A stretch of DNA of 64,000 bases from Macrostomum lignano. Taxonomy: Eukaryota. The DNA lies in the NCBI GenBank assembly GCA_002269645.1, contig NIVC01002532.1:1-64000 (forward strand), given 5' to 3'. The position numbers and the translations under genes were made by a program. Below are positions 1 to 23,700 of this stretch, one piece after another; within the stretch, counting starts at the first letter, position 1; each line of letters opens with the position of its first letter. The notes under the pieces are model-generated. The model made no database searches. It was not told where the DNA came from and saw nothing but the letters and a program-made list of their open reading frames with translations.

Positions 1-3000
1 ACAGTCTTTATTTTATGAGGATCAACAAAATCAATACGCTCGTTTACTATAAGCTTACTATAAGGTTTAAGAAGGTTTACTATACTCTAATTTTAAGAAA
101 ACTTAAATTCGCTTTATAAATAAGTAACTGTAAATAAACATTAATATATAATTATTAGATAAATGAGTTTTCTATTTTAATTATTTATTTTAATACCTAT
201 ACAAATTCTAGTCTAACTATTGCTCTTATTTGTGATATAGTATATTGCAAGCACATAAATATTTCTTAAGGCTATACAAACAAACTTAACACCATACAAT
301 AGAACAATTATTCAATAGGTATATAAACTACATGATAAGTAAAAATTATAAATCAATATCTAAATTAACACAAATAAAGGAATTTTAATTTAATATAATT
401 AAGAGCTGCATTTAAAATTAAGCTTTAACATAAAGTATATACATAAAACTGAAATAGAAAAATTGAATAGTTTCTCTAAATAAAGTAAACTAATTATTTT
501 TAATATAATTCAATCTATAGAAACTAAAAATTTAGAGCTATATATTTAAACTTAAAAAATTGGTTATACTAGCATTATATACTAAACTAGAATTAATTTG
601 TAAGTGATATTTCATTTTTAAAGCTTTAGATACAACATTTCTAATATAAATAAGAATAGGATAAGGATATATTTATTGAATCTTTAAACTAAAAAACCTT
701 TAATAATATGCTTAAAATACTTTAGGGTCTAAAAAATTAACAAATGGAAATTATTTATAATGCTTTACCATGTTGAACAGCTACAATTTCTACTATTAGA
801 ATTAGAAAAAATGTCTTAGACTAAGGGAAAATATTTGCAACTATTATTATAAGTACACATACTCTTTTAGTTAAAAATTAAGCATTCTTATACTTCCATA
901 TGATCTATGTGGTCAAATAAAATTTGCAATTAAATACTGATGGAGATATAAAATTCTTGTCCACTACATTAAAATATAATTCTACTAATATTAATAAGTA
1001 ATAACCTTACATAAATGCTTTTACAGTTTTAGATAAAAGTGCAGCAACATAACTAGCCAAACGCATTCATCAACAAAATCTACTTGCAATTAGTGCTGAT
1101 ATTAAGCGACCTACAGGCAAGTCATATGCATTCATGACAATGTTTTCATACCAATATTAGGAGGAAAAGTCATAAACAAAAAACTAGAACTAGAACTACA
1201 GTCTACACAGTGACAGAAGGCATAAATGTACGAAAATGAGTCAATAAGAACATCAGCCTTAGTCTTAAAATGTCTTGTCTTCTAGCTATACCTCTTCCGC
1301 TTTAATACAAGTGACTTTTTCTAGGCATTTGAAGTCCTCTTGCTCTAGTACACGGTAATTGAAATATTAATTTATAATTAATTTAAGCAACAGAAAAAAA
1401 CTCTAATACGATAATAAAAATCGAATCTCCTAATTTTAAACAGATAATAATGCATTTTTACGAAAACAAAAGTAAAAAAATAGGTATAAATATGCTTTCA
1501 GCTAAGTCTAAAACTTGCATATTTTTACACCTTTGTTTTTACGCATTTGTAAGGGGCTCATTAAAACCCGTTAAATTTCTTTTGTTGCACGTCCTAAGAA
1601 ATACAACAAGAATTTAGAAATATATAATATGGTACCGGACATTTCACTTCTAGGAAATAACCATTGTATATATGATGTCTAAAAAAGATTTACTTTTTAT
1701 TTATAGGTGGCTGGTATAATTTATCGTTGATAGAAGCCTGAAGAGTAATCGATTAGTCCCGAGCTTTTAGTTTCTGAGCTCAGACTCATTTTAGTACTTC
1801 AATTGGCCAACAATTTAAGCTGGCACTGTACTACATGGGATTTAAATGGGCATTTAAAAAACAATTTAAAAGCCTATTACCTGAAAAAACTAGCTGTTTG
1901 ACTTACAATATAATTAAGCACATGCAGCATATAACATGTTCAAGTACATGTTCTTCTATTAGAATATATATTTAGTTCACATCTGAATATCTATAAGCCT
2001 TATAAACTGATATTTGCAGCTGCTTGCAAGAGGCGATCATTATCTTGAGGATAATCCATCGTACCTAGCCGAACTGATATGCGTGCATTAGTAAGAGGCT
2101 AGAGCTGAGGCCTATATTATGATATTCTCTATTGATTAAGGAAAAATCATAAGCAAGTAGCTTATAATTGCCTTTCTAGTATCTAGATACAAAAAACAAG
2201 TCTCGAGAGAAATTTCTGCCTAGAGCATGACAAATAAGCTTAAAGCCTCTTAAAATGGTTGCTGAACTGCAGTCTTGAGATTTGAAAAAGCTGAGAGCGT
2301 TTCAAGTGCTTAAATTTGCTTCACGTCAAGTAAATTGCGCGACTGCCACAGATCATCGCGCGCGAATAATGGGTGCAAACAGGGTGCAGCTTATTCAACG
2401 GCAAGCCATCTCATTTGCCTAACAGCTGTCTGTCTCCAAGCCTTTGACTATTTTTTTTTGTTTTGCGCCATACTCTGAGAGATGCTGCCATGGCTGCCTG
2501 CAGATTGATGCAGTTTGTGAAACTGTTGCTGCTTGCTGATCTGAGGGAGTGGATAGGGGGCTGCTTAGCTCAATTGTTCTACGCGAGCGTTGACTTGGAG
2601 ACGAGATGGCTGGTTGATCCGTGGACCCGTAACCTAGCCTGATTTTAATATCCCTTCTCAAACTGCCTCTTCCTTCTATCCAGGCTTCCATCATGCCCGA
2701 GGCCTCCCGCTGCAAACAGATATTTCCAACCCCTACCTGCTGCGACAGGCATCTGATGGAAGAGGGGTTGCCTGATGCGATAAATGCATAGGCTTTTGCC
2801 CATTCTATCATGAGCGCTAGATGGATTCAGAGATGCTGAGTACAGAATCTATCCTACGTTTTCTCTTGTTCCCAAGTCTGTCCCTCTGCTTTCCACCCAC
2901 AGCCCCGCATGAAACTTTACTGCCTCACCTCACAACCCCTCTTCTCCGATTTGTTGTTATGTTACCATGGCGCTGTTGGATTGATTGCCTGCATACCCTT

Positions 3001-3136
3001 CCTGCAGCCGCCCCACCCCAGTCCGTGCGGGTTCTCACGCCCGCCCTCCTCATCCCGATAAGCATTTTAAAATCCCAACTAGACCGGGACGAGGCCTTTA
3101 ATCTCCCACATCGACAGTCCAATTTTCAAGCCACTC

Positions 3137-6100
3137 ATGCTATCAGTTCTGTTACTGTCTCTGGCCATTTTGGCCGGCCCAGCGGTTGGTCAGACCTTCG
3201 GCAACTTTACCTGGGTGTTTGAGAAACTCGACTACCACCCGACCACTGTGACTTTCGGCAACGTTCTTCGCTTCCGAGTTAACGGCACGATGGACGCCAC
3301 GTCGAGCAGCGAGCTGCGCATCGAAATCTACACGGCTAGCGACAACACGTCCGCCCTTTTCTCTATCTGCTCCCCTACGATCATCAGCATCGGCTCCGGT
3401 CTGAGTGGCAGCATCAACGCCACCGTCCTGAACAGCCAGTGGATCATGGAGTCCAAGGGCAACGACTATCGCAGCGAGAGAGCCATTCTGAACGTTGTCA
3501 ACATCACCAATACTGGGGCCTCCGGAGCTAACAGTAAGATTGTTTTTGAGTTCAGCGCAATTGTCCTGAATTCACCCCGCATGGCCCTAAACACGAGCTA
3601 CTATGTGAGCTTTGGTGCTCGCTACGCCAATCAAACTAAGGTCTGGGTGGGACAGGCAGCTTACCCCTGGCAGAATGTGACCGCTAACACTAGCGCCACT
3701 GTCTCCAACCTGACCCTAACGGGACCATCAAGTCTCATGATTGGCGAGACGGGAGTGTTTACCGCCAAATTTACTACGGGAGTCATGCTGAACCAGATCA
3801 TCATGGATATCTTTGCCCCACTGAACACAACCGACATCATGTCCGTCTGCTTTGCAACTATCGGCGAGGACAGTGGTAGATCATTCAGCTGTGGTCCGAC
3901 CAGCGGCAACCTGACCTTCCCGTCAAGGGTTCTATACGACGCTGCCTCAGGCGAGTACCGCAACGCCATCGCCACGTTTGACGCTGGAGAACTGATCAAC
4001 GGAGCGATGAGAACCGGCTCAACAACCGATGCGGACAACACAGTTACGTTCAAGATCGCGGCTAAGATGCTAAACGGAAGCTCCGTCGGTACGCCCTACA
4101 AGTTCGGCATCGCTTTGCAGCACAACTATGCCCAGATTTGGACGGCCAGCGTTAATGTTTCTGCCGAAGCAGCCAACTGGACAACGCCATCCGCAAACCC
4201 CGTAATGCAGCTTACGCAGAACATGGACTACGTAATGATTGGGTCCACGGCAACTGTATTTTTGAACATGACGCTCCCACGGAACAGCACCACCAACTAC
4301 AAGGTAGAAGTTGCCCTACCTTTTAACGACTCGCAGGCCCTCATGACGTTTCAACGCATTCGTATCCTCCATGTGGGTAGAAACATGCCTTGCTTCTACT
4401 ACAACACCAACAACGTGACGCTAATTAGCTCGGCTAATGACACCAACAAAGACTACATAATTTTCGACTTGGGTCCAATCACTGACACCGGAATCCGCAG
4501 CGGCCTTTATGACGACGACATTGTAATCGAGATTTCTGGGCTTGTTCTGAACCACTCGCTCATCACTTCCGGTGGCAGCCTGAAAGTAGTTGCTGGAGTT
4601 CGCTATGGCAATGCCATCTGGGTTTCGTCTCAGAACTTCACTGTCGTCACGACGCAACCGACTTACCCAATCAATAAGCAGCTGCAGATTACTCTTAAGA
4701 ACGCCATGACAGTCAGTACCATCTATAATGGAACAACCCATGCTTTCTGGCTTGACATCTACCAGCCCATCGGTACCCACTATGGCCCCATGGACATCGA
4801 GCTTATTACTGTCATGGATAACAATCGCGCTGTTTTGTCCATTTGCGATGTGCAGGTCCTGCTACTGGGAGATAATTTTATCAACATCAACACGAGCTCC
4901 TTGACGGTCACAAATGTTTCTACTGCTGATGATGGATTTGTTGATCGAGTGCTCATTCGATTCCCATCAAAATACGTTTCCAACGTGGGCATGCTCGACT
5001 TTCCATGGAGCCGAGAGAAGAATACTATTCGATTCCAAATTTTGACAAGCATAACACCTCATTACATCACGAACACAAGCAATCTCTTCAACGACAGCCT
5101 GTACTGGATTGGCGCGAGTGTGAAGTACGAAGAAAACAAGCTATTTGTGTCCCGTGTTGGAGTCGACTATGATCCGACTACTACGTTCAACAACATCTCG
5201 AGCGTAAACGAATCCTCATTTAGCACAGTCCAGCAGACACCCAATACTACCGTGTGGGTTGGAGGGACATACACAATGCAGTACAACATGACCAGCGTTA
5301 TCCAAAGCTATGGTCGCTACGTCATTGATGTTGTGTCGCTGAATGAGAACCTCCACATTTGCCGCGTGGGCCTGGCTAAAAGGGGTGTGAACGTACCTTG
5401 CCTTGGCCAAATGATTGAACCAAATGTGACCCTCGCTAATGGCAGCAGCACTATCGTTAAGGAGTACCAGTTAGATCTTTTGAACTTTGCAAATGTGGGT
5501 CAACCATGCACCAAGTACAGCGGTAGCGACAACTCCGGTCTGTTCGATGTAGTTCTACAAGTTAAGTCGGGTACTTCAGGATCGGTTGTGTCAGCTGGTG
5601 GGGTCATTTATATCGGCTCGAAAAAGCTCTGGGTGGATGGTGTGAATATAACAATCAACAGCACTCTGCCCAGCATTCAGTTCACGCCTCAATTTAGCCT
5701 TGGACTTAGAAATGGATCGCAGAATTTAGTCCGAAATGGTACCCATACTGTCGTACTGGAAGGATACCTGCCCGTGGATACCCTGGGCGAATACTCGGTC
5801 GACTTCCTCGTTCCATTTAACACAAGCGATCGAGGCAAGCTTCATATTTGTTCTACCAGGGTCGTTCGTGTTGGCTGGAACTTGCCCTGTGTGAATGACA
5901 CCCAGCTGACTAGGGTTTTCAACGACACTTACGATTCTGGGGCTACTGACAGAAGTCAAATTAACCTGGGCTTCATCCAAAACATTGCCACTTCTGGTGC
6001 GGTGGTTCAGGAAGATAACAAAATAATTATTGAGGCCGACATTTACGTGAACGGAACAATGACAAGCGTAGGAGAAACGCTTTGGGTTGGAGCCTCGGTG

Positions 6101-8240
6101 AACATCAGCAACAGTCTTGTTTGGGTCGGCAGCAAGTCGCTAACCGTAACGGACACTCTGCCCACTATAACTGGACTGAATCCCTACATCACCCCGGCCG
6201 TGACAGATACGGTGCAAATGAATATTTTCGAAGAGAGAACTTTCACATTTAATGTCACAATCGCCGAGTCGCTGACCAACTTCACGCTCACTATTTATTC
6301 CAACGCAACTCCTGCTAGTTCGGAGGCAAAGTTCACCTTCCGTGAACTAAATGTTACCTACAAGGGTACCAACATTTGCTGCCAGGACAAACTTAATTTT
6401 GTATATTCCAACGTTTCGACTTTGGGCAATACCCAGGTAGACGTGATCATGGCAAACGCTTATGTTGGTAACACTGGAGTCTTCAGACGTCACCAGTGGA
6501 GCAAGTATCATAAGGATTCTGACGTGCTGCAGTTCAAAGTAAAGGCTCGCCTAATGGATCACGAGGACAACATCGCCAATAGTGTCCAGTACATCTACTG
6601 TAACTTGACTTTCAGTGGAGAGACGGTCTCTACGAACGCTCCTGTGATGGTGAATATTACGGCCACGGATAAGCCAAGCTTACAGATCTTCCAGACGGAG
6701 GTACAGAACCTGTCGGTTTATAGTAAGATACCGGGCGCGGACGTACAGCTGGCTATTCGTCTCAACCACACGGAGACGTCACGCGGAAATGCTTACGGTG
6801 TCAACCTTTTCTGGTACATACCCTACGTCATTGGATACTCGGCTTTTGTGAGCTCCGTCCCATTCACTGTCACCGTCCAGAACAACACAAACGCTAGCGA
6901 GGGAATTCTAATCACTTTCCCTCGCATCACGTACACCGATGATCTGTACATCGTGATCAATGCTACAGTCGATCCTCTGGGCGCCTTGAAGTACGGAAGC
7001 GGCATCACCTTCATTACGCTACTTGCCGATGCTTTTTACACGCACCGAAACAAGCCAGGTTCCGTCGTTACTACAACCGCCGTAAATGCTTACTCGCCAA
7101 CCTTCCGCGCTGGACTGAATGTCTTCGTACCCGACTGCGCAAACCCATTGGGAATGGAGTCGGGTGCTATAGCAGACTGTCAGATCACCTCCAGCGGCTA
7201 TCTGGGCACGGACAGCCCACTCCACAGCCGCTACAACTCCACCGCTGCTTGGACTACGCTTCACCGCGGGCCACCATTCTACGGCAACGAGTTCCTGGAG
7301 ATCAACTTAGGAAATCGAACCCGAGTCAGCGCGGTCAGGCTTCAGTCGCATAAGGATGATACCAACAACAAGGTGGATACCTTCTGGTTTCAATACAGCG
7401 AGGAGGGTCTTCTATGGTTTGATGTCAACAGCAACAACACCAACACCAAGGAGGTAAGTTGCGCAATATTTTTAACTATATTAGAAGCTGTGCAGGCAGC
7501 CATTGTTGCCAGAAAACAGCGCATCAATACAAGCTGCTTTCAAATTTCGATAACTTTCAGGTTTACACGGCTACTTACTCTGGCGGCTCGGCTTACGTGA
7601 AGCTAAACAAGGCCATTGTAGGTCGGTACATCAGGATACTGCCTTTGACTGGCTCGCCAAAGACCTACAGCCGCTCGCTGCGCGTGGAATTTTATGGTTG
7701 TCAGCAGACAACCGACGTGACACCTGCTGAAGCATGCTACGAAGTGACGACCAAGGCCACTGGCTTCAGCCACAGTCGCAGCTACGTCATCAGTCCCAAA
7801 GAGGGCGCCATTTACGCTTGCATGCTCTATAGGCCCGGGGTCGGGCCCACTGCTCTCGCTCTGTGGACTTTGGCGCCAGCTGGGAAGCATTGGACAGCGT
7901 GATCAGCCAGATTGGCTTCGTCCTGCCGACCGACTCGAGCATCTACGGCACCGCCTACGATGAACGGAGCCGCATGAAGTCCATTGACGGCGGTTGGAGC
8001 TGGTTCGCCATCTCGGAGGAGGACTACACGACCAACCTGGCTCTGGGCCGCCGCGCCATTGAGATTCCGTGGCAGGACTTCGGCACCAACAACGCCACTC
8101 TGCTGTGCCCCACATATGGCATGAAGTACAATGACACCTTCACCGTTAGCGTCGACGTCACGGGCCTCCACATCAGCAAGGACGGCCAGAACAAGACCTG
8201 GACGCTGATCGCCGGCTGGGCCGATGCCAACTGGCTCTGA
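3137..8240 (+). CDS. Large secreted glycoprotein: signal peptide, about six ~160-170 aa beta-rich repeats, F5/8 type C (discoidin) domain, C-terminal Asp-box (BNR) region; apparent 1-nt frameshift near 7837-7840
   Basis: Exon 1 is 3137-7453 (GAG|gtaagt), intron 7454-7560 (ttcag|), exon 2 is 7561-8240. N-terminus MLSVLLLSLAILAGPAVG is signal-like. CANPLGMESGAIADCQITSS...GRYIRILP...SLRVEFYGC is a typical F5/8C domain. Asp-box motifs SVDFGASW, SIDGGWSW and SKDGQNKTW lie in a shifted frame after CCCGGGG; adding one G gives RPGGRAHCSRSVDFGASW and ~1665 aa. Confidence 0.8.
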
Positions 8241-10837
8241 GAGAGTCGGCCAGGATAAACCGGAGCACATAAAGTGGAGAACCAACTTTGCCTGAGGAAC
8301 TGAAAAGCATCGACTCCAGAACAGAGAATATTTAGGCTCTCGAGTTAATTTTTTCACGGCTTTATTTAACAGTTTAAAATTTTTCAAATCAAAAAACTCA
8401 TAAACGAAAATTATGTACCTTTAATTTTTTCTTATAAAAAGTAGTCACTTTTTTATACAGTGGTATTTTTCTGAGCTAGCAGTAATTTCATACCAGATAG
8501 CTGGACTGGCAACTCAAGGCTGCCTGATGCTTTTGGAAGAAATTTGGCATCGATCAAATGAGAACCGACACTTTTTATTTAAGCGTTACAGAATCAATGA
8601 ATAATGTCGCGCAAAACCAACTGGATATGAAGGAATGAAATCGGGAATTAGGAAGAGTGGCCTTGGCTGTCCGTCCGACTTTGGTTACTTTCGCTAGTAC
8701 AAGCGCTGCCCTCTTTTTAACCACTTTGCATACAAAAAAACAAAGCAACTGTTTAATTTTGCCTCTTCAAAAATGCCTGTCATTTTTCTGTCAGTTCACA
8801 GATTATCAACTGTTTTTGTTCCGCGAAAATCGATTCGTGTCAAAACTAAGTAACAAAATTCTACTCTTTCAAAAAAGCTAATACAGAATATACTGTCAAC
8901 AGCATCCTCTCCGCAATTCTGCTTGCGCAGTGGCCAGCTTCTCCTTTATTAACAGCAGAGTGACGCCAGAAGCCTCAAGAAGAGAAGAGAGGCTCAAGAA
9001 GAGGTGGCACTAAGAAGGCAAAGCGACTTTTTGTCTTTGAAAGACAGAACAGCTGCAGACATGCGGAGCTGGAGTGAGGGAACAATCGAAGAAGACGAAG
9101 GGGAGGAGAGGGGCGACAGGCCTCGCTAGCAGAGTTCCCGTCCCAGCAGTCCCGCGGCACGGCATGAAAAATTCATGGCGACACCACCGCCCTCCTCCGC
9201 CAGCCGCCAGATCGATGCGGCACTGCTGCTGCAATAAACCAGTCGGCTGCTGGCATCGGAGAGAGAAGGCTTCTGTACCCCCCCCCTGTTTGCAATTTGC
9301 CCCAGCTTCTAGTTACCAGGCGGGCAAACAGCAGCAGCCCCAGCTCAGGTGAGTTGGCATCAGGTGAGATGAAGGGACAGAGGCAGGCAGGCGGCTCATG
9401 CGAGACGATGGGGGCGGCGCTTCGCTGCGCGAGCATGCAGGGGTGGAAAATGAATGCGGGCGGCCAGTGGCGGCGGCCGATAGTTGATTTCTGCTGCATG
9501 GATGCGCAGAAGATGGGGGGAGGTGCCACCGCGCTTCGGCTGATGGGAGCGGTTGCCATGACAAATAGTTGGGGCTCATGTGACTGCCGGCTGATCCCAA
9601 CCCGCAGCCGCTTCGTCCCTCCGTCCTGGCTTCCCACTGCCCTGCGCCAGAATGCAAGAAATCGTCTCTATGAGTGGAGTAGCAGCGGGAATGTTTTGTG
9701 TAAGTCTGTTCTCTCAGTGCGGAGAAGCTGCTTGCTAGCCTCAGACATGGAAAGAGCTCATTAGATGCGACTTCGAATTGAGGAAGCTCACTAAAAACTG
9801 GAGGCTCACCTGTGTATTTTATATACGGACTTTTCTCTAAGATAAACCAAAGCCCGAAGAGCAAAATGCAGAATGGTAAATCTTAGCGACATCTGTCTTA
9901 GTGATTTTGTTCAAAGTTAAAACAGATGAACACGCGGGAGGAGCCCTGCAACCTCGGAAAAGACCTACCCAGGAGCTCAGAAGTTGAGAAATTGTCGCGT
10001 TTGAGTTGGAACAGCTCAGCGCTGCTCAAAGTGAAGGCTTACCTAATGTACCACGCCAGAAAACAGAATATTTTTTTAGCCTGTGTTAGGCCTTTAGTTA
10101 CTATCAGTAGTACTGCCAACAATATTTGTTTTTTTGAGGCGGACTGCCTGACGGCAGAAGGTTAAATATATAAAGTAAAGTAACTCAAAACAAAGGGCAA
10201 AGAGCACTTAACATGTATCCAGACTTCATCAAGGATTTTTAGAAGTACTCGTAGCGGTGTTATCGAGAACGTTGCACTCGCGATAACTGGGATTAGCGGG
10301 CCCTGTCATAAGACCCGACTTGGTCTCGAACTCGCAACTGCAGTTGTTGCACGAGGAAGCGTCTGATTTATTCTGTTTAGAATAAATAAATGAGTTCTGA
10401 CGCTTCCCAATAATCTTCTGATTAATCTTCTAATCTTCTGAATGTAGGCAAAAAATTCTCGGCAGCGGAAGATTTTCTACTAGTATTAACGGTTTTCATA
10501 AACTATTCTTTTAAAACCTTTATTCCAATTACGCTCGTATTTCATCAAAATCACATGCAGTTGACAGCTGCGAAACAGAAGGCACCAGGCGATCCAAGAA
10601 ATTAGCAACAGAGGAAGCGCTCGTACAGTGAGGCACTTCATGGCAACAGCTCAGCAGGGAAAGATAGCATATAATTTACGCTACTGTACTCTGCATCTAC
10701 ATGCATGCACTACGAGTACAGAAAATTGATTTTGCAATAAAAAAGCAGCAGTAATTAATACTGTACCTTCCATATACTAAAAATTTATGTAACTATTAGT
10801 TTAACTTTATAACTATATTAAATTGCTTTTCATGCCT

Positions 10838-13264
10838 TTACATCTGAAAAACCTTCAGGAAGTCTTTGAGAATCCACACAATATCACCGTCTGGCCAAGC
10901 CATGAAATTTTTGACATCCAGCGCTGACAGGCCCCGAGTCCGCCAGGCAGAGTAGTTTCTGCTGGCGAAGAAGTCCACTATCGTTGCTCTGTCAGTTCCG
11001 ACCATGTGCTGCCTCAGAAACTCCATCTGCACTGCAGCCACTCTGAACTGGCTGAACAGACAGCCCGACGTCCTCAGGAAGTCCGCCTCTCCGCCCTCGA
11101 TGTCCAGCTTGATGACGACGTTCCTCGTGCCGATGAGGCCGCACAGCCGCTCGCTCCTTACCGGCATCACGGGGATCGAGTCGATCACGGCTCTGCCGAA
11201 CTTGGTCGCTCCGCCGACGTTGCAGTCGTCAGGGAAGTTGAGGAAGCTCAGCTGGTCTCCGGATCCGATGAAGTTCCACACGAGCGCCGCATCGAGCGCC
11301 GCCGCGTTGAGGCTCAGCCGCAGTCGGAGCAGGTTGCGGATGTTCGCGTCCAGCGACACGACGGGCAGGCCGAGTCTCGCGGCCAGCAGGCTGTAGACAC
11401 CGATGTTGCAACCCGCGTCCAGGAAGGTCGCGTTCGGCACCTTCAGAGCCAGTCTCATGGTTGTATGGACCAGCTCACGCTCCCATTCGTGACTGGTCTT
11501 GATGGCCTCAGAAATCATGTCTTTCCCAGGGTAGACGAACATCTTCACCTTGGTGTTATTCATGTCCAGCAGATCGGCGGTCGCGCTGCCAGACCGCACA
11601 ACACCGAGGATTCTCTCATCGAACGGGTTCTGCAGCCGGCACATGGGGAACCCGCCCGCCGCTTTCTCGTACGCCTTGGCGCCGCTGCACAGGACGTGGC
11701 GGAGCGCCGGCTGCTGGAAGTCCACATTGCGCAGCTCATTGTAGATTTTGCAGTTTGTTTTTATTGTTGCCGGTGTTACACTTTAGACTATCCGGGGTTT
11801 TTTTGTCTGGCCCGGATATCCGAACGCACATACGATATCCGCCCGGATACTGCCAAGCAAAAAACCTGCTTTGTTTTGTCCTTCCCGGATATCTTGAGCT
11901 GCTTTGCATTGTCCGGGCACTTTGAGATGTCTCTCCCGGACATCCTACGGCACTGACTCTGCTATCCGGCCCGGAGATCACAAGAAGGAGAAGTTGTCTT
12001 GGGACATCCGGCTGTAGGTTGAAAGAGAAGGGTCAGCCTGCGGAGACAGAGGTTTGCTTTAGGACATCCGGCTACTGATATCCGGGGCCAGAAATAGCAA
12101 AATTTCGACATCACTTTTCGCAAATTAGGAAATAACTTTTTTGCTACTTTTTCAATGGCAAACATCCGCGTCATGCTTATTTAACGGTGTATGTTTCAAT
12201 ATCAATTTCGCGCTTCACACACTCCAAAAAGAACTAAAATCAAAGCTAATATTCTCAACCGAAAAGCAGTCTGTTACTCCATTCACCAATCTAATTCGAT
12301 AAATCAAAAACTGGCGATCCGCTGATTGAAGCGTGATGAGCCACAGCCTTCTTCCGATGCTTTGATTGAGATGCTTTCCGTTTTCATGTTTTAAGAAACC
12401 AGCCAGCTGATAAGTATTATTGTCGAGACATTTGATGATGCGGTAGACGTCTTCTGCAGATTATCTCTCTCTTTTGTACTGAAATGTTCCGGCAGTTCAA
12501 CATGCTCGTCGCTAAAAACGCTTACGTAGGACTTGGACAAGAAATATATTCCAACTATCTGAAAAGAATGTGTATTATAATTTGCGCAAACATTCCTTTG
12601 CGGGCTATTAGCTCGTACACTGATATTCATGGCATGTACGCTTGTGCGGGTACATTTAACGACAGTCTATTATCGATTTATTCTTAGACTGCATCTTATC
12701 CGCCCCTCCCAAGCACTCTGAGTCAGTCCCATTCTCGCTTAATGATGTCATTCTGCCCCACGCATTCACATGCGCCTTATCTTGTAAATACGAGCTAATT
12801 TGACCAACTTGCCACCCTAATCTTTATTCACCCCGGACAATTCATGACCTAGGATATTTCAAAGCCCGATTTTGTTGTGCCTTGGATTATCTAGGGTAGG
12901 TTATCGCAAAGCGACAATAATTTTGCTTTGCGATGGCCCCCGGATAAATTAAGACCCCGGTGAACAGAAAGCCTAACAGGGTTGCCGGTGCTCTTGTTTG
13001 CAACTCTGTTTGCAGCGGTCGCGTAGCAGCAGCCTTCGCGACCACTGTTTCGTTTTTTCTACTCGAAATCTGTCTTTCACTTTCCTTTGAAGTTTCTACG
13101 ATTTGGATTGGAGTCGGTATATGGGCATCGGAAATGAAATGCTTTTTCGAAGACCGCGGTTCGATATGGTCGCGCCATCGTACCCTGGAGTACAAAATGT
13201 ACGCCATGAAGAGGGCGGTGGCGCACAAGGCGAGCAGCATAATATTTTGCTTTTGCCGAGCCAT
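10838..13264 (-). CDS. FkbM-family (Methyltransf_21-like) SAM-dependent methyltransferase, copy A, type II membrane anchor; interrupted by a ~1.2-kb insertion or intron
   Basis: 5' part 13264-~12978 encodes MARQKQNIMLLALCATALFMAYILYSRV (signal anchor). 3' part ~11780-10838 contains FLDAGCNIGVYSL and VIKLDIEGGE (FkbM motifs). The two parts join in frame either by removing 11776-12990 or by splicing 12977-11781. Confidence 0.75.
11776..12980. mobile_element. Putative non-autonomous transposon-like insertion in FkbM copy A, flanked by a 10-bp direct repeat
   Basis: GTTGCCGGTG occurs exactly at 11766-11775 and 12981-12990. Many (T)ATCCGG/CCGGATA motifs cluster near both ends. No clean TIR and no transposase ORF seen. 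Confidence 0.6.
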
Positions 13265-14742
13265 CAGTGGGAAGTGAACTTCAGTTGTCCCAAATCCTGC
13301 AGTCACTTTGAACTCTGGCCACGACACGACTGGCTTCGTGAGCTTCAGGCAGAAGTATTTCAGTGCGATGCATTATTATTCCAACTCTGCTCACTCGCCA
13401 GCAAGGACTGTTGCTCTGATTCAAGCTCACCAAACCCTATTGGCTGCTGATCGAACAAAAGATTCGGTTAGAAAAGACTGCGCATACTAGACTGCGCAGA
13501 CTGCGCATACAAGACTGCGCAGACTGCGCATTAAGGAGAGCTTACGAAAAACCTTTTACTACCCCCAGTGCAGTGTGCGATTTTTCTTAGTATAGAAAGA
13601 TTGGCGATCACGCTACGCTCGTGTAGACGGCCGCTGCCAGGCATAAGCGCTGAGCTCAGGCACAAAACAGTGTGGGATAGGAATTTCCCTTGCTCCTAAG
13701 TCCGGCGCTAAGTCATAAATGATATTTGCGAGCTGCGCATGCAGTATTGGAAAACGGCAGAGTCGTGCCAATCTACGCATTTTCCTAAGCTCATTGCATG
13801 TCGCGCAGTGCTCCAGAGGCTCCAGAGGTACACTGTAGAGAGGTTCAGAGTCAGAAGAGAAGCATACGGCAAAGCATTAGTGAAGCATTGGTGCCAGGGC
13901 AGCTGGTTACGCGCAATTGTTTAATCGTTGCAGCAGTCCGTACTGAGACGGTGCAAGCCAAACGGCAGTGACTGCAGCATAACTGAGCGGGAGAGTTGAA
14001 CGTTTCATTCCGCACAAGACCAGCTACCACTGCGAGATCGCCTCGTATTACTGCCGTATTGAGAATTACGAGTCGAAGTAAGAGATAAAAGGCAAATTGG
14101 GTACACAGAGATTCACGACTTGTTACACCGTCTCGAGCCTAGTGCATTTACATTGCAACTCACAAACTGAGAGACATCTTGCCGCGCCAAAACAAAATCT
14201 CATTCAAGTGCAATAAGCTACAACCTCACGGCGGGCAGGCCCTCACGCTATGAGTACAGTACTTACATTAAACTTATAGAATCAGTCAATAGAAACGCAT
14301 AAGATCGTTAGCTCATCAAGAGTGACGCAATCCAGTGGAGCCACAGTATTGTCAATCGTTCCTCTGCCCCCCTCCAAATTGAATTGGGAGGAGATGGGGA
14401 AAGCTAAGGCGAGAAAAATTCCTATTAAATGACTTCAGCAAAAGTGGACTGAAGCCGGAATAATGAAGTTCCGGGAATAAAATGCTCAAACGCCGCCAGT
14501 AGTTCCAGAAATGATTTTCTATTTTGACGCAAAGTCTTGATGTCCAATCTAAAACTCTTTGGTCATAAAGTCAGCAATTTCTGTACGCAAGCACCTAAAC
14601 CAATACTACAATGTGTTGTACCAGCTGCAAAGCTTTACCTGGCTTTAATTGATTTGGAATGCCAGAATGGCAAGATAAAGAGCAGAGGCGCAGCCATTAA
14701 ACTCCGCGTCAAGTCAGCCAAGTCTGGGATCTGACATCCGGC

Positions 14743-15879
14743 ATGGCTCTCTCAAGGCAGAAAATTCTGGCTCTCCTACTTACTGCCTGCTGCGTCGCCT
14801 TCTGGGCGCTATTGGAAGAGAGGCAGCCAGCAAAAAGGACTCAGAAGAGCTCGAAATTCAACAGCATCAGCTGCAGGTTGGACTCTACGCTTTGCGACGC
14901 TCTGGTGGAGAGCAGCAGCGGAGCAGCTCAGCATGTAAGGTGCCACAGCCACCTGGAGCTGCGCGAATTTGACTTTCGTCACCCTAAGTTCAGGAGCATC
15001 CTCTGCAAAGATAAAAAAGCATTTGTGAGAGCTGGAGGGAGCTACCCGCTGTGTCGGCTGCAACACCCGTTCAATATTCAGTTGCTGGACGTTGTCAGGA
15101 GAGGAAGTCTGGTCGCGAAACTCCTTGATTTGAGGAATGAGTTTATCCAAATGTTTGTGTATCCTGAGAACGACGCAATTTCTATGCAGATCATGACAAG
15201 CAAGAAGTGGGAGCCAGAAATTGTGCATACAACCATGAGACTGGCTCTGAAGGTGCCGAACGCGACCTTCCTGGACGCGGGTTGCAACATCGGTGTCTAC
15301 AGCCTGCTGGCCGCGAGACTCGGCCTGCCCGTCGTGTCGCTGGACGCGAACATCCGCAACCTGCTCCGACTGCGGCTGAGCCTCAACGCGGCGGCGCTCG
15401 ATGCGGCGCTCGTGTGGAACTTCATCGGATCCGGAGACCAGCTGAGCTTCCTCAACTTCCCTGACGACTGCAACGTCGGCGGAGCGACCAAGTTCGGCAG
15501 AGCCGTGATCGACTCGATCCCCGTGATGCCGGTAAGGAGCGAGCGGCTGTGCGGCCTCATCGGCACGAGGAACGTCGTCATCAAGCTGGACATCGAGGGC
15601 GGAGAGGCGGACTTCCTGAGGACGTCGGGCTGTCTGTTCAGCCAGTTCAGAGTGGCTGCAGTGCAGATGGAGTTTCTGAGGCAGCACATGGTCGGAACTG
15701 ACAGAGCAACGATAGTGGACTTCTTCGCCAGCAGAAACTACTCCGCCTGGCGGACTCCGGGCTTGTCAGCGCTGGATGTCAAAAATGCCGAACTATGGGA
15801 GGACTGCGATATATTGTGGATTCATAAGGACTTTGACCACCTTATTTACAGCGAAGGATTTACACTTTCCACTGGCTGA
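14743..15879 (+). CDS. FkbM-family SAM-dependent methyltransferase, copy B, single exon, 378 aa, type II membrane anchor
   Basis: Intact ORF. N-terminal KILALLLTACCVAFWALL anchor; FLDAGCNIG and IKLDIEGGE motifs; paralogous to copy A. Confidence 0.85.
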   Translation: MALSRQKILALLLTACCVAFWALLEERQPAKRTQKSSKFNSISCRLDSTLCDALVESSSGAAQHVRCHSHLELREFDFRHPKFRSILCKDKKAFVRAGGSYPLCRLQHPFNIQLLDVVRRGSLVAKLLDLRNEFIQMFVYPENDAISMQIMTSKKWEPEIVHTTMRLALKVPNATFLDAGCNIGVYSLLAARLGLPVVSLDANIRNLLRLRLSLNAAALDAALVWNFIGSGDQLSFLNFPDDCNVGGATKFGRAVIDSIPVMPVRSERLCGLIGTRNVVIKLDIEGGEADFLRTSGCLFSQFRVAAVQMEFLRQHMVGTDRATIVDFFASRNYSAWRTPGLSALDVKNAELWEDCDILWIHKDFDHLIYSEGFTLSTG

Positions 15880-16401
15880 TGCACCTTTGCTTTGTATTTC
15901 AAATTGAACATTTAACCTACAAGATTTGTCAGGCTTTCAAGGTAGCTCGTTACTGCTCCCATTGAGATCAATCTGATGAGATCAATAAATGGCAGCAGGA
16001 ATACAAAAAAACGAACATGAAAAACTAACCCCCTTTAAATCCATGCCAAGTATGACATTCAAGATCACACCGCCAATAAAGAGACGCCACCTAACTTTTC
16101 AATGACCACTTAGAAGCTGGACGAGACACAAAGTCTTACATTTTGAGACTGAACTTGCATCTCAAAGCTTTGACTCATTGCTAGTATTAATTACATATCA
16201 ATTGCTCATCCTGGATGTAACTCGCCCGCTCTGCGTCTGTATTGGCTCATTTTTCCTGCAATTTCCGGATTCCGTCTGCCCTGCTCGCCCTACGTACCCA
16301 AGCGAGCGATGCCGCCTTGAGACGGAAATTTTTTTATTGATTTTTCTCCCTAATTACTACGAGTGTCTACAATCATACGACTAAACGGCGTTGCCCTCTC
16401 T

Positions 16402-16762
16402 TTTTTTATTAGAGGCAGGGGGTTGTGTGCACCCTGGCGCACTTTAAGCGACATAGGCACACAACCGGCGAGAGGCATTACTGCCCATTCCGCCGACTCC
16501 CCTGAGCAGGCACACAAGCGCGCGGATACGTACGCAGGCACACACTCACACAGGAGTGTACAGCGGCCCTAACTTTATTTTATCGTTAGGCATGTACACT
16601 TCACTGCGCCTTGGGGGGTTGGCTCTCAAGGCCGTTAATTGCACGAGCAGAGCCAAGCCGAGATTCCAATTCAGCCCCAAATTAATGTGACTGCACTTGG
16701 AATCGAGCCTGGGTCGCTGGCACACCAGAGCAGCTGCGCTACCGCTGGGCTACGGCCCCCCT
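16402..16762 (-). mobile_element. tRNA-derived SINE with 14-bp target-site duplication
   Basis: Minus-strand head GGCCGTAGCCCAGCGGTAGCG...CCCAGGCTCGATTCC has Pol III A- and B-box-like motifs. A-rich tail at 16402-16411. TSD GCGTTGCCCTCTCT at 16388-16401 and 16763-16776. Second copy at 43575-43876. Confidence 0.8.
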
Positions 16763-17735
16763 GCGTTGCCCTCTCTGGTAAGGTACATAATAAAGTACAT
16801 TTACTACTCTTTTAAATAATAAGCGTTTTTGATTCGCATAAGAAATTCGAGAATTTATTCAAATTTAATTCTAATTGAGAATGGCTAAACTGGCTTCAGG
16901 TCAGGCCTGGCAATTGCTATATTTGTATGCTTTCTGATTGTGAAATAAAATATAAAGAAAGCCACTAAGCATTCCCATGGATATTTATTACTAAATACTA
17001 CACAAGCAACGCTACAGCTAAACAAAGCAGAGCGCTAGGGTGACAGGGAAAAATCTCGATGCCAATGAAACAGTCGAATTTCACTGGTGCATGCGACTCT
17101 AATTAGGTAACTACTGACATCTAAGAGCAAAATAGCTGTAAACAATCCTATATACTAAAAATGAAATGTCTGTAACTAACTAGCTATGCGATAGATTTCA
17201 GAAAAAATGGCTCAACCGATTTTCTTCAAACTTGCACCATTCGATCAGAAATTTTCCTGGGACGGTACATGCATCCTGGCTAAGAAATTGCTCAATTTTA
17301 AAGGGATTAAATATTCGAAAAACATGCTTTTTTGCAAAGGTCAAGCAGCTCTTTCGACCTGGAATGCATTGTAAGAATGCTAGAGAAAAAACTGACTGGC
17401 TCAATTCCGATTGTGATAAAGATTGCATCACAACAATTTGAAAACAGTGTCGATGAAATGCACACCCGACTTGATTAAAATTGCGTAACTATATTGCTAA
17501 CTTAAATTGAGACTGATACTGGCTGACTGAGAAATTGATTATGTCATAACTTTCTACTCCAATTGACTTGCTGTAAGAATTGAATTATAAGGGCCACAAT
17601 TCATGTTCTCCAAATGAAAAGAGATAGCCCAGATGCGAACAGACTGGGATGCTAATGTAGTGACCTGGGTTCGAATCTTAGTAGTGCAAAAATATTTTTT
17701 TATTAAAACATTAAAAACACAAAACTGCTAAACAT

Positions 17736-19995
17736 AAAAGAACCACAATGTCAAACATAGAAGAGCCACCATGTTGAACATTAAAGAGCCACCATGTCGA
17801 AAATTAAAGAGCCACCATGTCAAGCATAAAAGAGCCACCATGTTGAACATTAAAGAGCCAACATGTCAAACATTAAAGAGCCACCATGTAAAGCATATAT
17901 GTGACTCCATGTCAAACATATACGTGACTCCATGTCAAACAAAAAAGAGCCACGATGTAAAACATATACTTATGACTCTTTGTCGAACATAAAGAGCCAC
18001 CATGTAAAGCATATACGTGACTCCATGTCAAACACATACGTGACTCCATGTCAAACATTAAAGAGCCACCAAGAAAAAAATTAAAAGCCACTATGTCAAA
18101 CATTAAAGAGCCACCATGTCAAACATTAAAGAGCCACCATATCGAACACTAAAGAGCCACCATGTCAAACATATAAGTGACTCCATGTCAAATATATACG
18201 TGACTCCATGTCACACATAAAAGAGCCACCATGTAAAACATATACATATGACTCCATAACAAACATTAAACAGCCACCATGTCGAACATTAAAGAGCCAC
18301 CATGTCAAACATAAAAGAGCCACCATGTCAAACACTAAAAAGCCACCATGTCAAACAATAAAGAGCCACCATGTCAAACATATACGTGACTACATGTCAA
18401 ACATATACGTGACTCCATGTCAAACATAAAAGAGCCACCATGTAAAACATATACTTATGACTCTTTGTCGAACATAAAGAGCCACCATGTAAAGCATTTA
18501 CGTGACTCCAGGCCAAATATATACATGACTCCATGCCAAACACATACATGACTCCATGTCAAACATTAAAGAGCCACCATGTCACACATTAAAGAGCCAA
18601 CATGTCAAACATTAAAGAGCCACCATGTAAAGCATATATGTGACTCCATGCCAAATATATACATGACTCCATGTCTAACACATACGTGACTCCATGTCAA
18701 ACATTAAAGAGCCACCATGTCGAACGTTAAAGAGCCACCATGTCGAACATTAAAGAGCCACAATGTAGAACATTAAAGAGCCACAATGTAGAACATTAAA
18801 GAGCCACCATGTCGAACGTTAAAGAGCCACCATGTCGAACATTAAAGAGCCACAATGTAGAACATTAAAGAGCCACCATGTCGAACATTAAAGAGTCACA
18901 ATATTTAGAACATTAAAGAGCCACAATGTCAAACATTAAAGAGCCACCATGTCAAACATTAAAGAGCCACCATGTCAAACATTAAAGAGCCACCATGTCA
19001 AACATATATGTGACTCCATGTCAAATATATACGTGACTCCATGTCACACATAAAAGAGCCACCATGTAAAACATATACATATGACTCAATAACAAACATT
19101 AAACAGCCACCATGTCGAACATTAAAGAGCCATCATGTCAAACATTAAAGAGCCACTATGTCAAACATTAAAGAGCCACTATGTCAAACATTAAAGAGCC
19201 ACCATGTAAAGCATATATGTGACTCCATGCCAAATATATACATGACTCCATGTCTAACACATACGTGACTCCATGTCAAACATTAAAGAGCCACCCTGTC
19301 GAACGTTAAAGAGCCACCATATCGAACATTAAAGAGCCACAATTTAGAACAATAAAGAGCCACCATGTCGAACATTAAAGAGCCACCATGTCTAACATTA
19401 AAGAGCCACCATGTCGATTATTAAAGAGCCATCATGTCAAACAATAAAGAGCCACCATGTTGAACATTAAAGAGCCACCATGTCAAATATTAAAGAGCCA
19501 CAATGTAGAACATTAAAGAACCACCATGTAGAACATTAAAAAGCCACCATGTCAAACATTAAGGAGCAAAAATGTAGAAAATTAAAGAGCCACAATGTAG
19601 AACATTAAACAGCCACAATGTCGAGCATTAAAGAGCCACCATGTCGAACATTAAAAAGCCACCATGTCAAACATTAGAGAGCCACCATGTTGAACATTAA
19701 AGAGCCACCATGTCAAACATTAAAGAGCCACCCTGTCGAACATTAAAGAGCCACCATGTCGAACATTAAAGAGCCACCATGTCGAACATTAAAGTACTGC
19801 CATGTCGAACGTTAAAGAGCCACCATGTCGAACATTAACGAGCCACGATGTCAAACATAAATGAGCTACCAAGTTAGACATAGAAGAGCCACCATGTGAA
19901 ACATATATGTGACTCCATGTCAAACATTAAAGAGCCACCGCTTCTAACATTACTGAGCCACCATGACAAACATAAAACTGGCACGATGTCATAAC
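17736..19995. repeat. 23-bp satellite (~95-100 units) with two interleaved variants
   Basis: Units TTAAAGAGCCACCATGTCAAACA and TATACGTGACTCCATGTCAAACA. Confidence 0.9.
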
Positions 19996-20761: not shown

Positions 20762-23700
20762 TCACAGCTTCAGGTTGCGCAGGTCGCAGGCTGCCTCGAA
20801 CATTGTGGCCATGCTCCAGGCCTGGGCTTGGCAGCTGTGTGGGCAGGGCTGCAGTTCATTGGGGGGGGGGGGGTTGGAGTTGGTCATTGCACGAGATCGC
20901 CTACTAACAAGTAGTTAATAAAGCATCTTGAAGCGAATATCTTATAGCGAGTACAAAAAGGTCAAGACCAGCTTGGACGGTGAACTATGAAGGAATGAAA
21001 AACATTCGCAGGAGGGTTGTGAAAACCTTGGGCGACATCGTTGAGACAATTCAACAGACTCACACACGCGCGTATACGGGGTGTACAGGGTGACTTTCTA
21101 GACTGCCTGTGCCTCATCGGGTGTGAATCGCATGACGGCCGATCTCCCAGCCGACTTTTGTGCACAAGCTTCAAGTAAATGTGGCTGCGCACAAAATAGA
21201 ACCAACTCTGCCCCCCTACACACACTCTGCCCCCTACACATGCTCTGCCCGCCTAAACACACTCTGCCCCCTACACATGCTCTGCCCCCACTACACACAC
21301 TCTGCCCCCTTACACATGCTCTGCCCCCTTACACATGCTCTGCCCCTTACACACGCTCTGCCCCCCTACACACACTCTGCCCCTTACACATGCTCTGCCC
21401 CCTTACACATGCTCTGCCCCTTACACATGCTCTGCCCCCCTACACATGCTCTGCCCCCTTACACATGCTCTGCCCCTTACACATGCTCTGCCCCCCTACA
21501 CACACTCTGCCCCTTACACATGCTCTGCCCCCTTACACATGCTCTGCCCCTTACACATGCTCTGCCCCCTTACACATGGTCTGCCCCCTTACACATGGTC
21601 TGCCCCCTTACACATGCTCTGCCCCCCTACACACACTCTGCCCCTTACACATGCTCTGCCCCCCTACACACACTCTGCCCCTTACACATGCTCTGCCCCC
21701 TTACACATACACATGCTCTGCTCTCTGGATTCTTTACTTGCTACTCTCCAGTAGGCGGTTTTTCATACTGTTGTAGCTGCAGCGGTACTTTTGAGCAGTG
21801 ATTAGATGGAAGCTACAACTAATCAATATGAGCAGAAACAGCTGCTGAAGCCTCACCTCTCCATCCCGGTTGGTGAGCTCGGGCAGGCTGTGCCAGTCGG
21901 AGGCCTCCATGGCGGCCTGGCAGCGGGCCAGCACGGCCTGGACGTGACCGACCTGGCCGGAAGGCGGCTCCGAGAAAGCGAGCCGGGCGCGCAGGTAATA
22001 GCCCACCGGCCACAGCCACTCGGGCCCATTGTGATAGGAGAAGCCGCCGGCCACGCTGAAGTCGCCGGAGTCGTCCGAGTTGTCGTAGCGGCCGCGGTAG
22101 GCCGGGTCGGCGGGGTCGAGCGTCCGCATGCCGAGCGGGCCAAGCAGCCGGCGCTCCGTCAGCTCCAGGGCGGCGCGGGCTCGCTCGGCGCTGAACAAGA
22201 ATGGTGCCGTCACCATGGCAACTAGAAAGTTTGGCCGCAACTGCCGGCCTTCGGGGTCGTCGGCGGGATCCACGTCCGGCAGCCAGCGGTCGCGGTAGTG
22301 GCCGGACTCGGGCAGCCAGAAGCGCGGCTCGAACTGCTTGGCGAGGTCGGCGGCCCAGTCGGCCCAGGAGACGAGCCGGCCGCCGTGCTTGACGCCCTCG
22401 TACGGGTAGGCGGACCTGCGCAGGAGCGATAGGCAGAGCGGCACTCAGATAAAATGGACACGAAAACGGCACCAAGGCCAAGAAGCATCTCAGAGTCACT
22501 TGCGCCGCCCCAGAGTTGTTGCAGGTAACACAGGTAAAAAGGAAAGAAGTTACTCTAGACTACTCTCTAAAACGACGAGATGTTACGGTACATGTCGGCT
22601 GAAAGTCGTCTTTGCGATGCTTTTGCAACGAATCTTGAGGCCGTAGAGCCGTATCTGAGGCGTGCTGGAGTCGCTGTAGAATCTTTGAGCTGCGTCTAAA
22701 GCGCATCTGCATCAATTTTATATATTAGAAACGCACTTCACATCTATAAAAACTTGATTTAGGTTTTTTAATTTACGTTAACTTGCGGAGTATTAACAAT
22801 AGCCAGGACAACAGATACAGGAATTAACTAGATGGGCCACTCAGCACATTTGCGTGCAATAGGTGCATTATTTTGGGCAACTCCCAACGGCAGCTCAGAG
22901 CTGCCACCTTATTGCTGCAGGGTAAGTTGAAGCTCTGATTAATGAAGCATTGGCAGAGCAAATAATCAGAGCCTAACCTGGGAAATTTGGCCAGCCGGTC
23001 CACCACGGCAGCGCACAGTCCCGTCAGCTCAACAGCGCAGCCGTGACGGGGCGTGGCGGGCACGCCGCGGTTGCCGGCCCGCTCCGAGCCGCCCATTTTG
23101 TCCATCCAGGTGCCGCAGTTCCAGCGGTTGCCGCCAACTACGAAGGGCCAGCTGAGGCCGGCGGTGACGCGGAAGCCTTCGGGCCGCATGTGCGAGTCCA
23201 GCTGCGGCCCGGCGTTGCGCTCCACAAAGTCGATGCCGTCAGCGTGGCGCTGCAGGGCCTCCTGCATCACCTGGAGAGGCAGGTAGGAGCTTAGTTAGTT
23301 AACGCTGGCTATGACACTGCGTCAATTGACTTAGCGAGGAACCGAGGTACGCTTGCAGCTGCCTATGATGCTAGAAGATGCTCCATGTGTGCTCAGAAAG
23401 ACAGACAAGAACAGTTATTAGCAGGGCATTGTACTGTGCATCGCACAATGCACCAATGCATCTTGGAAACTCCGCAGAAGAGCGTAAATTGGCTCACAAC
23501 ACCAGCAGCTGCGCATTGGACTCTGTTGCTAACCAAAAAACAAAGCTTGCAAATTTTGCAGGAGAAAAGCTCACCTGGTGCAGCGGCTGCACGCAGTCAA
23601 ACACCGGCTGAGAATCGTCGGTTGGGAAGAGGCGCAGCACGGGATCGGCAAGGACGCTGGCACCGGACGGCGCCATGGCAACGAACTCGCAGACGCAGTG

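Follow-up and report, generated by a model that had tools for sequence, protein, structure and literature searches.

A 1.2-kb insertion with a 10-bp target-site duplication splits one copy of an FkbM-like methyltransferase gene in Macrostomum lignano

We analysed the first 64 kb (hereafter the window) of the Macrostomum lignano contig NIVC01002532.1 (75,194 bp; assembly GCA_002269645.1). An alignment of window and contig shows 100% identity over positions 1–17902. Within it, an FkbM-like methyltransferase gene, referred to here as gene A, is split in its single coding exon by a 1.2-kb non-coding insert. The insert is bounded by a perfect 10-bp target duplication, its unoccupied site is present on three other contigs, and its flanks together form an intact reading frame. 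We favour, with moderate confidence, the view that a non-autonomous mobile element recently inserted into one redundant methyltransferase copy, an event that would have left that copy truncated or mis-spliced. The phenomenon is an ordinary one, the split of one gene copy by a mobile-element-like insertion. The coordinates of the features discussed below are collected in Table 1.

Table 1. Features of the insert, its host gene and the neighbouring paralog, in window positions
Feature	Position	Strand	Remarks
10-bp direct repeat GTTGCCGGTG, left copy (target-site duplication)	11766..11775	.	exact match
10-bp direct repeat GTTGCCGGTG, right copy	12981..12990	.	exact match
Inserted non-coding segment, 1205 bp, probably a non-autonomous mobile element	11776..12980	.	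absent from three homologous contigs
Left arm of weak terminal inverted repeat, GTTACACTTTAGACTATCCGGGGT	11775..11798	+	first base is the last base of the duplication
Right arm of weak terminal inverted repeat, GTTAGGCTTTCTGTTCACCGGGGT	12954..12977	-	stops 3 nt short of the insert boundary
Subterminal cluster of about 10 CCGGAYAT / ATRTCCGG-type motifs, both orientations	11789..12086	.	left ~320 nt of the insert
Candidate donor GT (cct/GTTAGGCT)	12976..12977	-	4.6 bits; 94th percentile among decoy GTs; exceeded by 16 of the 18 true donors
Candidate acceptor AG (GTCTAAAG/tg)	11781..11782	-	-3.1 bits; 64th percentile among decoy AGs
Gene A, 5' part of the coding exon (Met at 13264, membrane anchor and linker, 95 native residues)	12981..13264	-	frame analysis
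Gene A, 3' part of the coding exon (308 residues with the FkbM-like catalytic region, ending at the stop codon)	10838..11775	-	frame analysis, profile search
First in-frame stop on read-through of the insert	12887..12889	-	open reading frame 12887..13327
Paralog B, intronless 378-aa FkbM-like gene, head-to-head with gene A	14743..15879	+	C-terminal half homogenised with A

A filled site and three empty sites

The first-pass annotation of this DNA had recommended looking for an empty-site allele. Such alleles are present on three other contigs of the same assembly, namely NIVC01000543.1 (locus L001), NIVC01003492.1 (L005) and NIVC01001987.1 (L007/L008). A combined query of neighbouring genes recovered a discoidin-domain protein only, and this protein with its cluster members led to four contigs, the three just named and NIVC01002532.1 itself. 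All three represent the same locus, bordered by the discoidin gene and, at the other end, by AGL, the gene of the glycogen debranching enzyme. Each empty site carries the 10-mer once (L001 10347–10356, L005 18243–18252, L007 10480–10489). Alignments of the window with each contig run up to one copy of the repeat and resume from the other, with an overlap of exactly 10 bases. The empty-site sequence reads ..AAGAGCACCGGCAACAAT.., contains one CACCGGCAAC and bears no footprint. Thus, the locus shows a filled/empty insertion polymorphism with a target-site duplication of 10 bp, or of 9 bp if the last G is counted as part of the element.

The perfect direct repeat described in the first-pass annotation was recovered unchanged: it is exactly 10 bp long, extends on neither side and has a period of 1215 bp. 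It should be stressed that such a repeat alone lies within chance, as shuffled windows contain about 30 exact 10-mer pairs at a spacing of 1000–1500 bp. Its significance comes not from the rarity of such pairs but from the position of its copies, which are the exact homology breakpoints relative to three uninterrupted gene copies, each with a single CACCGGCAAC. The probability that a 10-mer matches at one pair of positions fixed beforehand is about 1e-6.

When the interior and one repeat copy (1215 bp) are removed, the minus strand carries an open frame of 403 aa (..RAPATIKTNCKIYNELRN..); the predicted in-frame fusion that matches intronless paralog B is therefore real. Both halves of gene A are open and show no other lesion. 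The fused, insert-free protein matches M. lignano proteins only, the best being P0001 (BOX15_Mlig015726g1), to which it is 92% identical over the whole length. P0001 is encoded by the L001 gene copy, which is annotated, intronless and 1308 bp long; the L005 and L007 copies are unannotated and have an intact 410-aa frame. The scores for Pfam PF05050 (Methyltransf_21) are 20.3 bits for gene A and 20.4 for paralog B, against a cut-off of 22.7, which the paralog P0003 passes with 32.9. Read through unspliced, gene A encodes 125 aa, of which 95 are native and 30 come from the insert.

Sequence character of the insert

On the plus strand the insert ends in ..CCTAACAGG, on the minus strand in ..CTAAAGTGTAA. 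The two arms of the weak inverted repeat (Table 1) agree at 16 of 24 positions without gaps. Among 2000 random 40-mer pairs from the window, 14 were as good. The search for this end pattern was post hoc and carries little weight. The insert holds 9 of the 34 ATCCGG/CCGGAT hexamers of the window, 8 of them in its left ~320 nt, and this is the only cluster in the window with at least four per 300 nt; the subterminal motifs pointed out in the first-pass annotation thus stand. Three more CCGGAYAT-type motifs lie near the other end, at 12832, 12939 and 12956.

The search for further copies covered the 64-kb window and about 175 kb of other M. lignano loci (L001–L008), some 239 kb in total. Within this sample, the CCGGAYAT-type motif cluster is unique to the insert, and the end pattern was not found elsewhere. 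BLASTN with a word size of 9, applied to the same sequences, returned only the insert itself. The first-pass annotation had proposed such a search together with that for an empty site; on these ~239 kb the empty site was found and other copies were not. The insert family, if there is one, is apparently not abundant, because no second copy turned up in this sample, from which four distinct copies of a short interspersed element (SINE) were recovered.

Six-frame translation of the insert gave no match among 5.8 billion proteins at E ≤ 1e-3, so it holds no remnant of a transposase or reverse transcriptase, and bacterial insertion sequences and coding mitochondrial fragments are likewise absent. 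Rfam returned nothing for positions 11500–13300 at E ≤ 1, ARAGORN found no tRNA in the whole window, and Tandem Repeats Finder reported nothing within the insert.

The weak 24-nt inverted repeat, taken together with the cluster of CCGGAT/ATCCGG-type motifs, suggests a transposon origin. The element is probably a non-autonomous DNA transposon, and it is apparently undescribed. In the scenario that we propose, a non-coding element of about 1.2 kb would have inserted into the single coding exon of gene A, a member of a multicopy FkbM-like cluster. A transposase supplied in trans would have cut the target with a stagger, and fill-in of the overhangs would have created the duplication. The transposase-binding ends may correspond to the weak inverted ends together with the subterminal motifs of CCGGAYAT type.

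Other classes of element were considered and rejected. A retroposon mobilised by a long interspersed element (LINE), such as a SINE, does not fit an insert that has no A-rich or simple-repeat tail, no RNA polymerase III (pol III) head and no remnant of a reverse transcriptase. A solo long terminal repeat (TG..CA, 11774–12978) is ruled out, as only 2 bp would be duplicated. A hAT-type duplication of 8 bp needs two chance matches and does not improve the ends.

The explanation that fares best next to a mobile element is captured filler DNA, in which a staggered break in the exon was end-joined with an unrelated fragment and the filled-in overhangs became the 10-bp repeat. End-joining capture was put forward for new introns of Daphnia and Drosophila, with short flanking direct repeats as its signature (PMC3020277), and the repeats around our insert fit that description. 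The interior, single-copy in the window and L001–L008 and without coding or RNA-family similarity, would also suit a captured fragment, as would inverted ends that are weak and out of register. Nevertheless, an overhang of 10 nt would be long if the staggered break arose spontaneously, and the dense CCGGAYAT motifs in both orientations, like the inverted ends (14/2000), resemble transposase-binding ends. We therefore regard capture as unlikely.

Retroposition has left its own traces at this locus. A tRNA-derived SINE of about 361 bp, with A and B boxes and an A-rich tail, occupies window positions 16403–16761 on the minus strand, where it is flanked by a 13-bp duplication (GAGAGGGCAACGC). Further copies lie at L001 926–1286, window 43572–43876 and L004 10513–10836. 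One copy, 97.5% identical and flanked by a 12-bp duplication (TCTGAGTGCCGC), lies within AGL intron 9 of NIVC01000543.1 and is absent from the window at ~22438–22450; the SINE of the window is itself polymorphic between contigs. Since copies 97.5% identical differ in presence between contigs, retroposition has been recently active. It looks unlike the insert, because the local SINE has an A-rich tail and duplications of 12–13 bp.

Splice sites, gene dynamics and the locus

Splice sites were scored with a position weight matrix built from 18 mapped M. lignano introns, a small set that makes the scores indicative only. Ten introns come from AGL, where the 99%-identical protein P0010 was fitted to the window; five come from Argonaute, mapped by the continuity of highly conserved motifs, with animal Argonautes as the reference for the motifs; three belong to the methyltransferase paralog P0002, whose annotated protein was reconstructed exactly.

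The first-pass annotation had seen two possibilities in the insert, a transposon-made, introner-like intron and an inactivating insertion. Its proposed splice, 12977..11781, does leave 18 extra nt in frame: the resulting frame of 409 aa (..RAPATLVTPATIK..) is open, with LVTPAT added and no stop. The donor hexamer GTTAGG, likened to that of AGL exon 9, agrees with it over a full 8-mer (cag/GTTAGGCT in AGL intron 9). No further similarity links the insert with AGL intron 9, and we rejected a relationship between the two. The candidate donor is weak but scores within the range of true donors; it has T at position -1, where 16 of 18 true donors have G.

Donors that begin with GTT account for 4 of the 18 mapped introns (22%). 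They are AGL 31409–30951, 30491–29260 and 22977–22416 and Argonaute 45554–46847, with GTTCGT, GTTTGA, GTTAGG and GTTTGT. This is an unusually high share of T at position +3.

At the other end, the lack of a polypyrimidine tract noted earlier is real. All 18 true acceptors are YAG (17 of them CAG), with a pyrimidine fraction of 0.50–0.83; the candidate, CTAAAG/T, is AAG with a fraction of 0.44, below every true site. Stronger acceptors lie inside the insert on the gene strand at 12038 (CTGTCTCCGCAG, 10.7 bits) and 12012 (8.8 bits), which would compete with it and break the frame. We also enumerated alternative solutions with one or two introns, in frame and with all sites at 0 bits or more. The best in-frame alternative, from 12977 to a cryptic exonic CAG at 11685, loses 32 conserved native residues, including the CKIYNELRN motif, and each two-intron solution includes a site below 3 bits and was discarded. 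By the measure of the 18-intron matrix, the insert has no competent pair of splice sites. No protein with the +6-aa junction exists among the 5.8 billion searched.

A functional gene copy with a nascent, introner-like intron, spliced as above with its six extra residues in a tolerant linker, is nonetheless worth weighing. The frame would be kept, the donor is identical to one in use in AGL and of a class that makes up 22% of donors, and added codons have a precedent in Aureococcus introners, which contribute 12 bp or 4 aa (PMC9860276). The linker between anchor and catalytic domain is poorly conserved, and a real intron of P0002 lies upstream of the homologous point, 4–5 codons away and in identical phase. 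That intron is unrelated in sequence to the insert; the linker tolerates introns, but the two are different introns. The acceptor, however, resembles a random AG and has the lowest pyrimidine content, the donor departs from the usual G at -1, and the stronger internal acceptors would be used first. Neither a family of similar introns in the 239 kb nor a transcript or protein with the extra residues was found. We consider this reading quite improbable.

Hence the suggestion of an introner-like intron did not hold up, given an AAG acceptor of -3.1 bits, better acceptors inside the insert and no other copy in the ~239 kb, and an introner reading is unsupported. The inactivating insertion is the better of the two proposals. 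An element on its way to becoming an intron, partially spliced from the GT of the inverted end to the AG near the other end or to the exonic CAG at 11685, is likewise rather improbable. If it were true, flatworms would have their first documented introner-type intron gain, within a family that contains intronless as well as intron-bearing paralogs; and if the insert is spliced at all, it would represent a rare birth of an animal intron from a transposon, with the empty site still at hand. Nothing found points that way. The literature linking introners with Macrostomum consists of no more than incidental mention, and the main text of the 2022 introner survey does not mention flatworms.

Under the favoured reading, inactivation by a mobile element, transcripts of this copy would mostly read into the insert and stop after 125 aa, or would be mis-spliced. 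As no convincing 3' splice site is present in the insert, the copy on NIVC01002532.1 would then amount to a null or a crippled allele. Its loss would be tolerated in a polyploid genome, because intact copies and paralogs exist.

Several points weigh against this reading. No second copy turned up in the sample, so the repetitive, mobile nature of the insert is putative. Its inverted ends match poorly and are offset from the register of the duplication by 3–4 nt. The protein search revealed no transposase relative. One true acceptor scored -3.2, close to the candidate's -3.1, and the GTTAGG donor is of a type truly used, so some splicing is possible. The annotation gap at gene A is uninformative either way, since NIVC01001987.1 and NIVC01003492.1 carry intact copies that likewise lack annotation.

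The split could also be ancestral, an old intron or insertion that was precisely deleted from the other copies, either through recombination of the two 10-bp repeats with each other or through gene conversion, which is active in the cluster. Synonymous divergence (dS) is 0.011 between the L001 copy and those of L005/L007, and 0.08–0.09 between these and the window copy. Because the former are mutually close and further from the latter, one deletion in their common ancestor is formally possible and, on this count, formally as parsimonious as one insertion. Against this, the outgroups are uninterrupted at the homologous point (paralog B and two P0003 genes), the repeat is still perfect, the empty sites have no footprint, and a flanking 10-bp repeat implies an original insertion anyway. 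Insertion is more parsimonious than loss, and we rate ancestral interruption as very improbable. A chimeric long read or mis-join in NIVC01002532.1 is hardly credible: the insert is on one contig only, and the gene A/B block is ~95% identical to other copies while the left flank reaches 99%, but a mis-join would not produce a perfect duplication at the homology breakpoints with flanks collinear and in frame.

The methyltransferase cluster is fast-evolving and gene-converting. At least three sequence versions of gene A exist, in addition to its paralogs. The ratio of nonsynonymous to synonymous divergence (dN/dS) among the A copies is 0.6–1.1, and constraint on them is thus weak. An older SINE copy lies inside the interrupting intron of P0002, its intron 1.

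Other haplotypes carry one or two extra 1.9-kb tandem units that are absent from the window (L001 6395–7804; L007 13013–14418 and 14944–16349). In each, a third FkbM-like paralog contributes its N-terminal half, and behind it comes the 524-bp C-terminal half common to A and B. These units represent copy-number variation, with gene conversion homogenising the C-terminal halves. A relation of the insert to the 1.4-kb units of other haplotypes was ruled out, as those encode the N-terminal half of the third paralog.

Relatedness along the locus is mosaic. Window positions 1–10425 are 99.0–99.3% identical to NIVC01003492.1 and NIVC01001987.1, while the gene A/B block (10860–15672) shares only ~95% identity with any other copy. 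Gene A differs at its 3' end as well, where the window has an A-specific sequence and the other three contigs have a B-like one.

Intact FkbM-like frames without gene annotation are found at paralog B and at the gene A copies of L005 (17337–18737) and L007 (9574–10974). The near-identical copy on NIVC01000543.1 is annotated; transcript-based annotation evidently assigns a gene to only one of the copies. A lookup of the exact protein of paralog B returned no record.

Further along the window, AGL spans 11 exons on the minus strand (31820–20765) and an Argonaute gene lies on the plus strand at 43.0–48.7 kb; arrestin-like and isocitrate-dehydrogenase-like exons are also present. Long minisatellite arrays occupy ~25.8–27.8, 29.3–30.3, 31.9–32.9, 46.0–46.7, 52.9–53.3, 54.1–55.0 and 59.0–60.1 kb. 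Several of them are inside mapped AGL or Argonaute introns (e.g., 25.8–27.8, 29.3–30.3 and 46.0–46.7 kb). The arrays give rise to long spurious open reading frames in several frames on both strands.

Comparison with known systems

The insertion polymorphism between duplicated or allelic copies in the polyploid, repeat-rich genome of M. lignano is useful as a marker, and the insert provides a seed sequence for what appears to be an undescribed element that duplicates 10 bp of its target. Within the same locus, the LINE-mobilised SINE at 16403–16761 resembles it in a variable duplication of about 10–13 bp and in presence or absence between contigs. It differs in the retroposon hallmarks listed above, namely tail, pol III head and reverse-transcriptase remnant, all of which the insert lacks.

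The introns attributed to break repair in Daphnia and Drosophila (PMC3020277) share with the insert a unique fragment, a short perfect direct repeat and an otherwise intronless coding region. Their repeats, however, overlap the splice sites and their splicing has been demonstrated, whereas the repeats of the insert lie 3 and 5 nt outside the putative sites and its ends are transposon-like.

The introners of Micromonas, Aureococcus, Symbiodinium and others (PMC9860276, PMC12130899) are likewise exonic insertions of transposon type, with target duplications and filled/empty polymorphism. As in introners, GT and AG lie just inside the ends of the insert, and whole codons are possibly added, as in some cases from Aureococcus. 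Introners nevertheless form families of many near-identical spliced introns, while the insert is one copy in ~239 kb with a poor 3' splice site, and its duplication of 10 bp compares with the 3–9 bp reported. Algal introners are short; at 1.2 kb, the insert is much longer.

A target-site duplication of 9–11 bp is a hallmark of the Mutator superfamily in the Repbase and Wicker classifications. Compared with Mutator-like elements (MULEs), including those without terminal inverted repeats, the insert has no long inverted repeat, its inverted ends match at only 16 of 24 positions with an offset of 3–4 nt from the duplication, and neither a relative of the MuDR-type transposase nor further copies were found. 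On the other hand, its 10-bp duplication falls within the 9–11 bp of the superfamily, and a non-coding interior, motifs near the ends and insertion into a gene are all traits of MULEs. The duplication of 9–10 bp thus points to Mutator-like elements as the closest match, with the insert as a candidate member.

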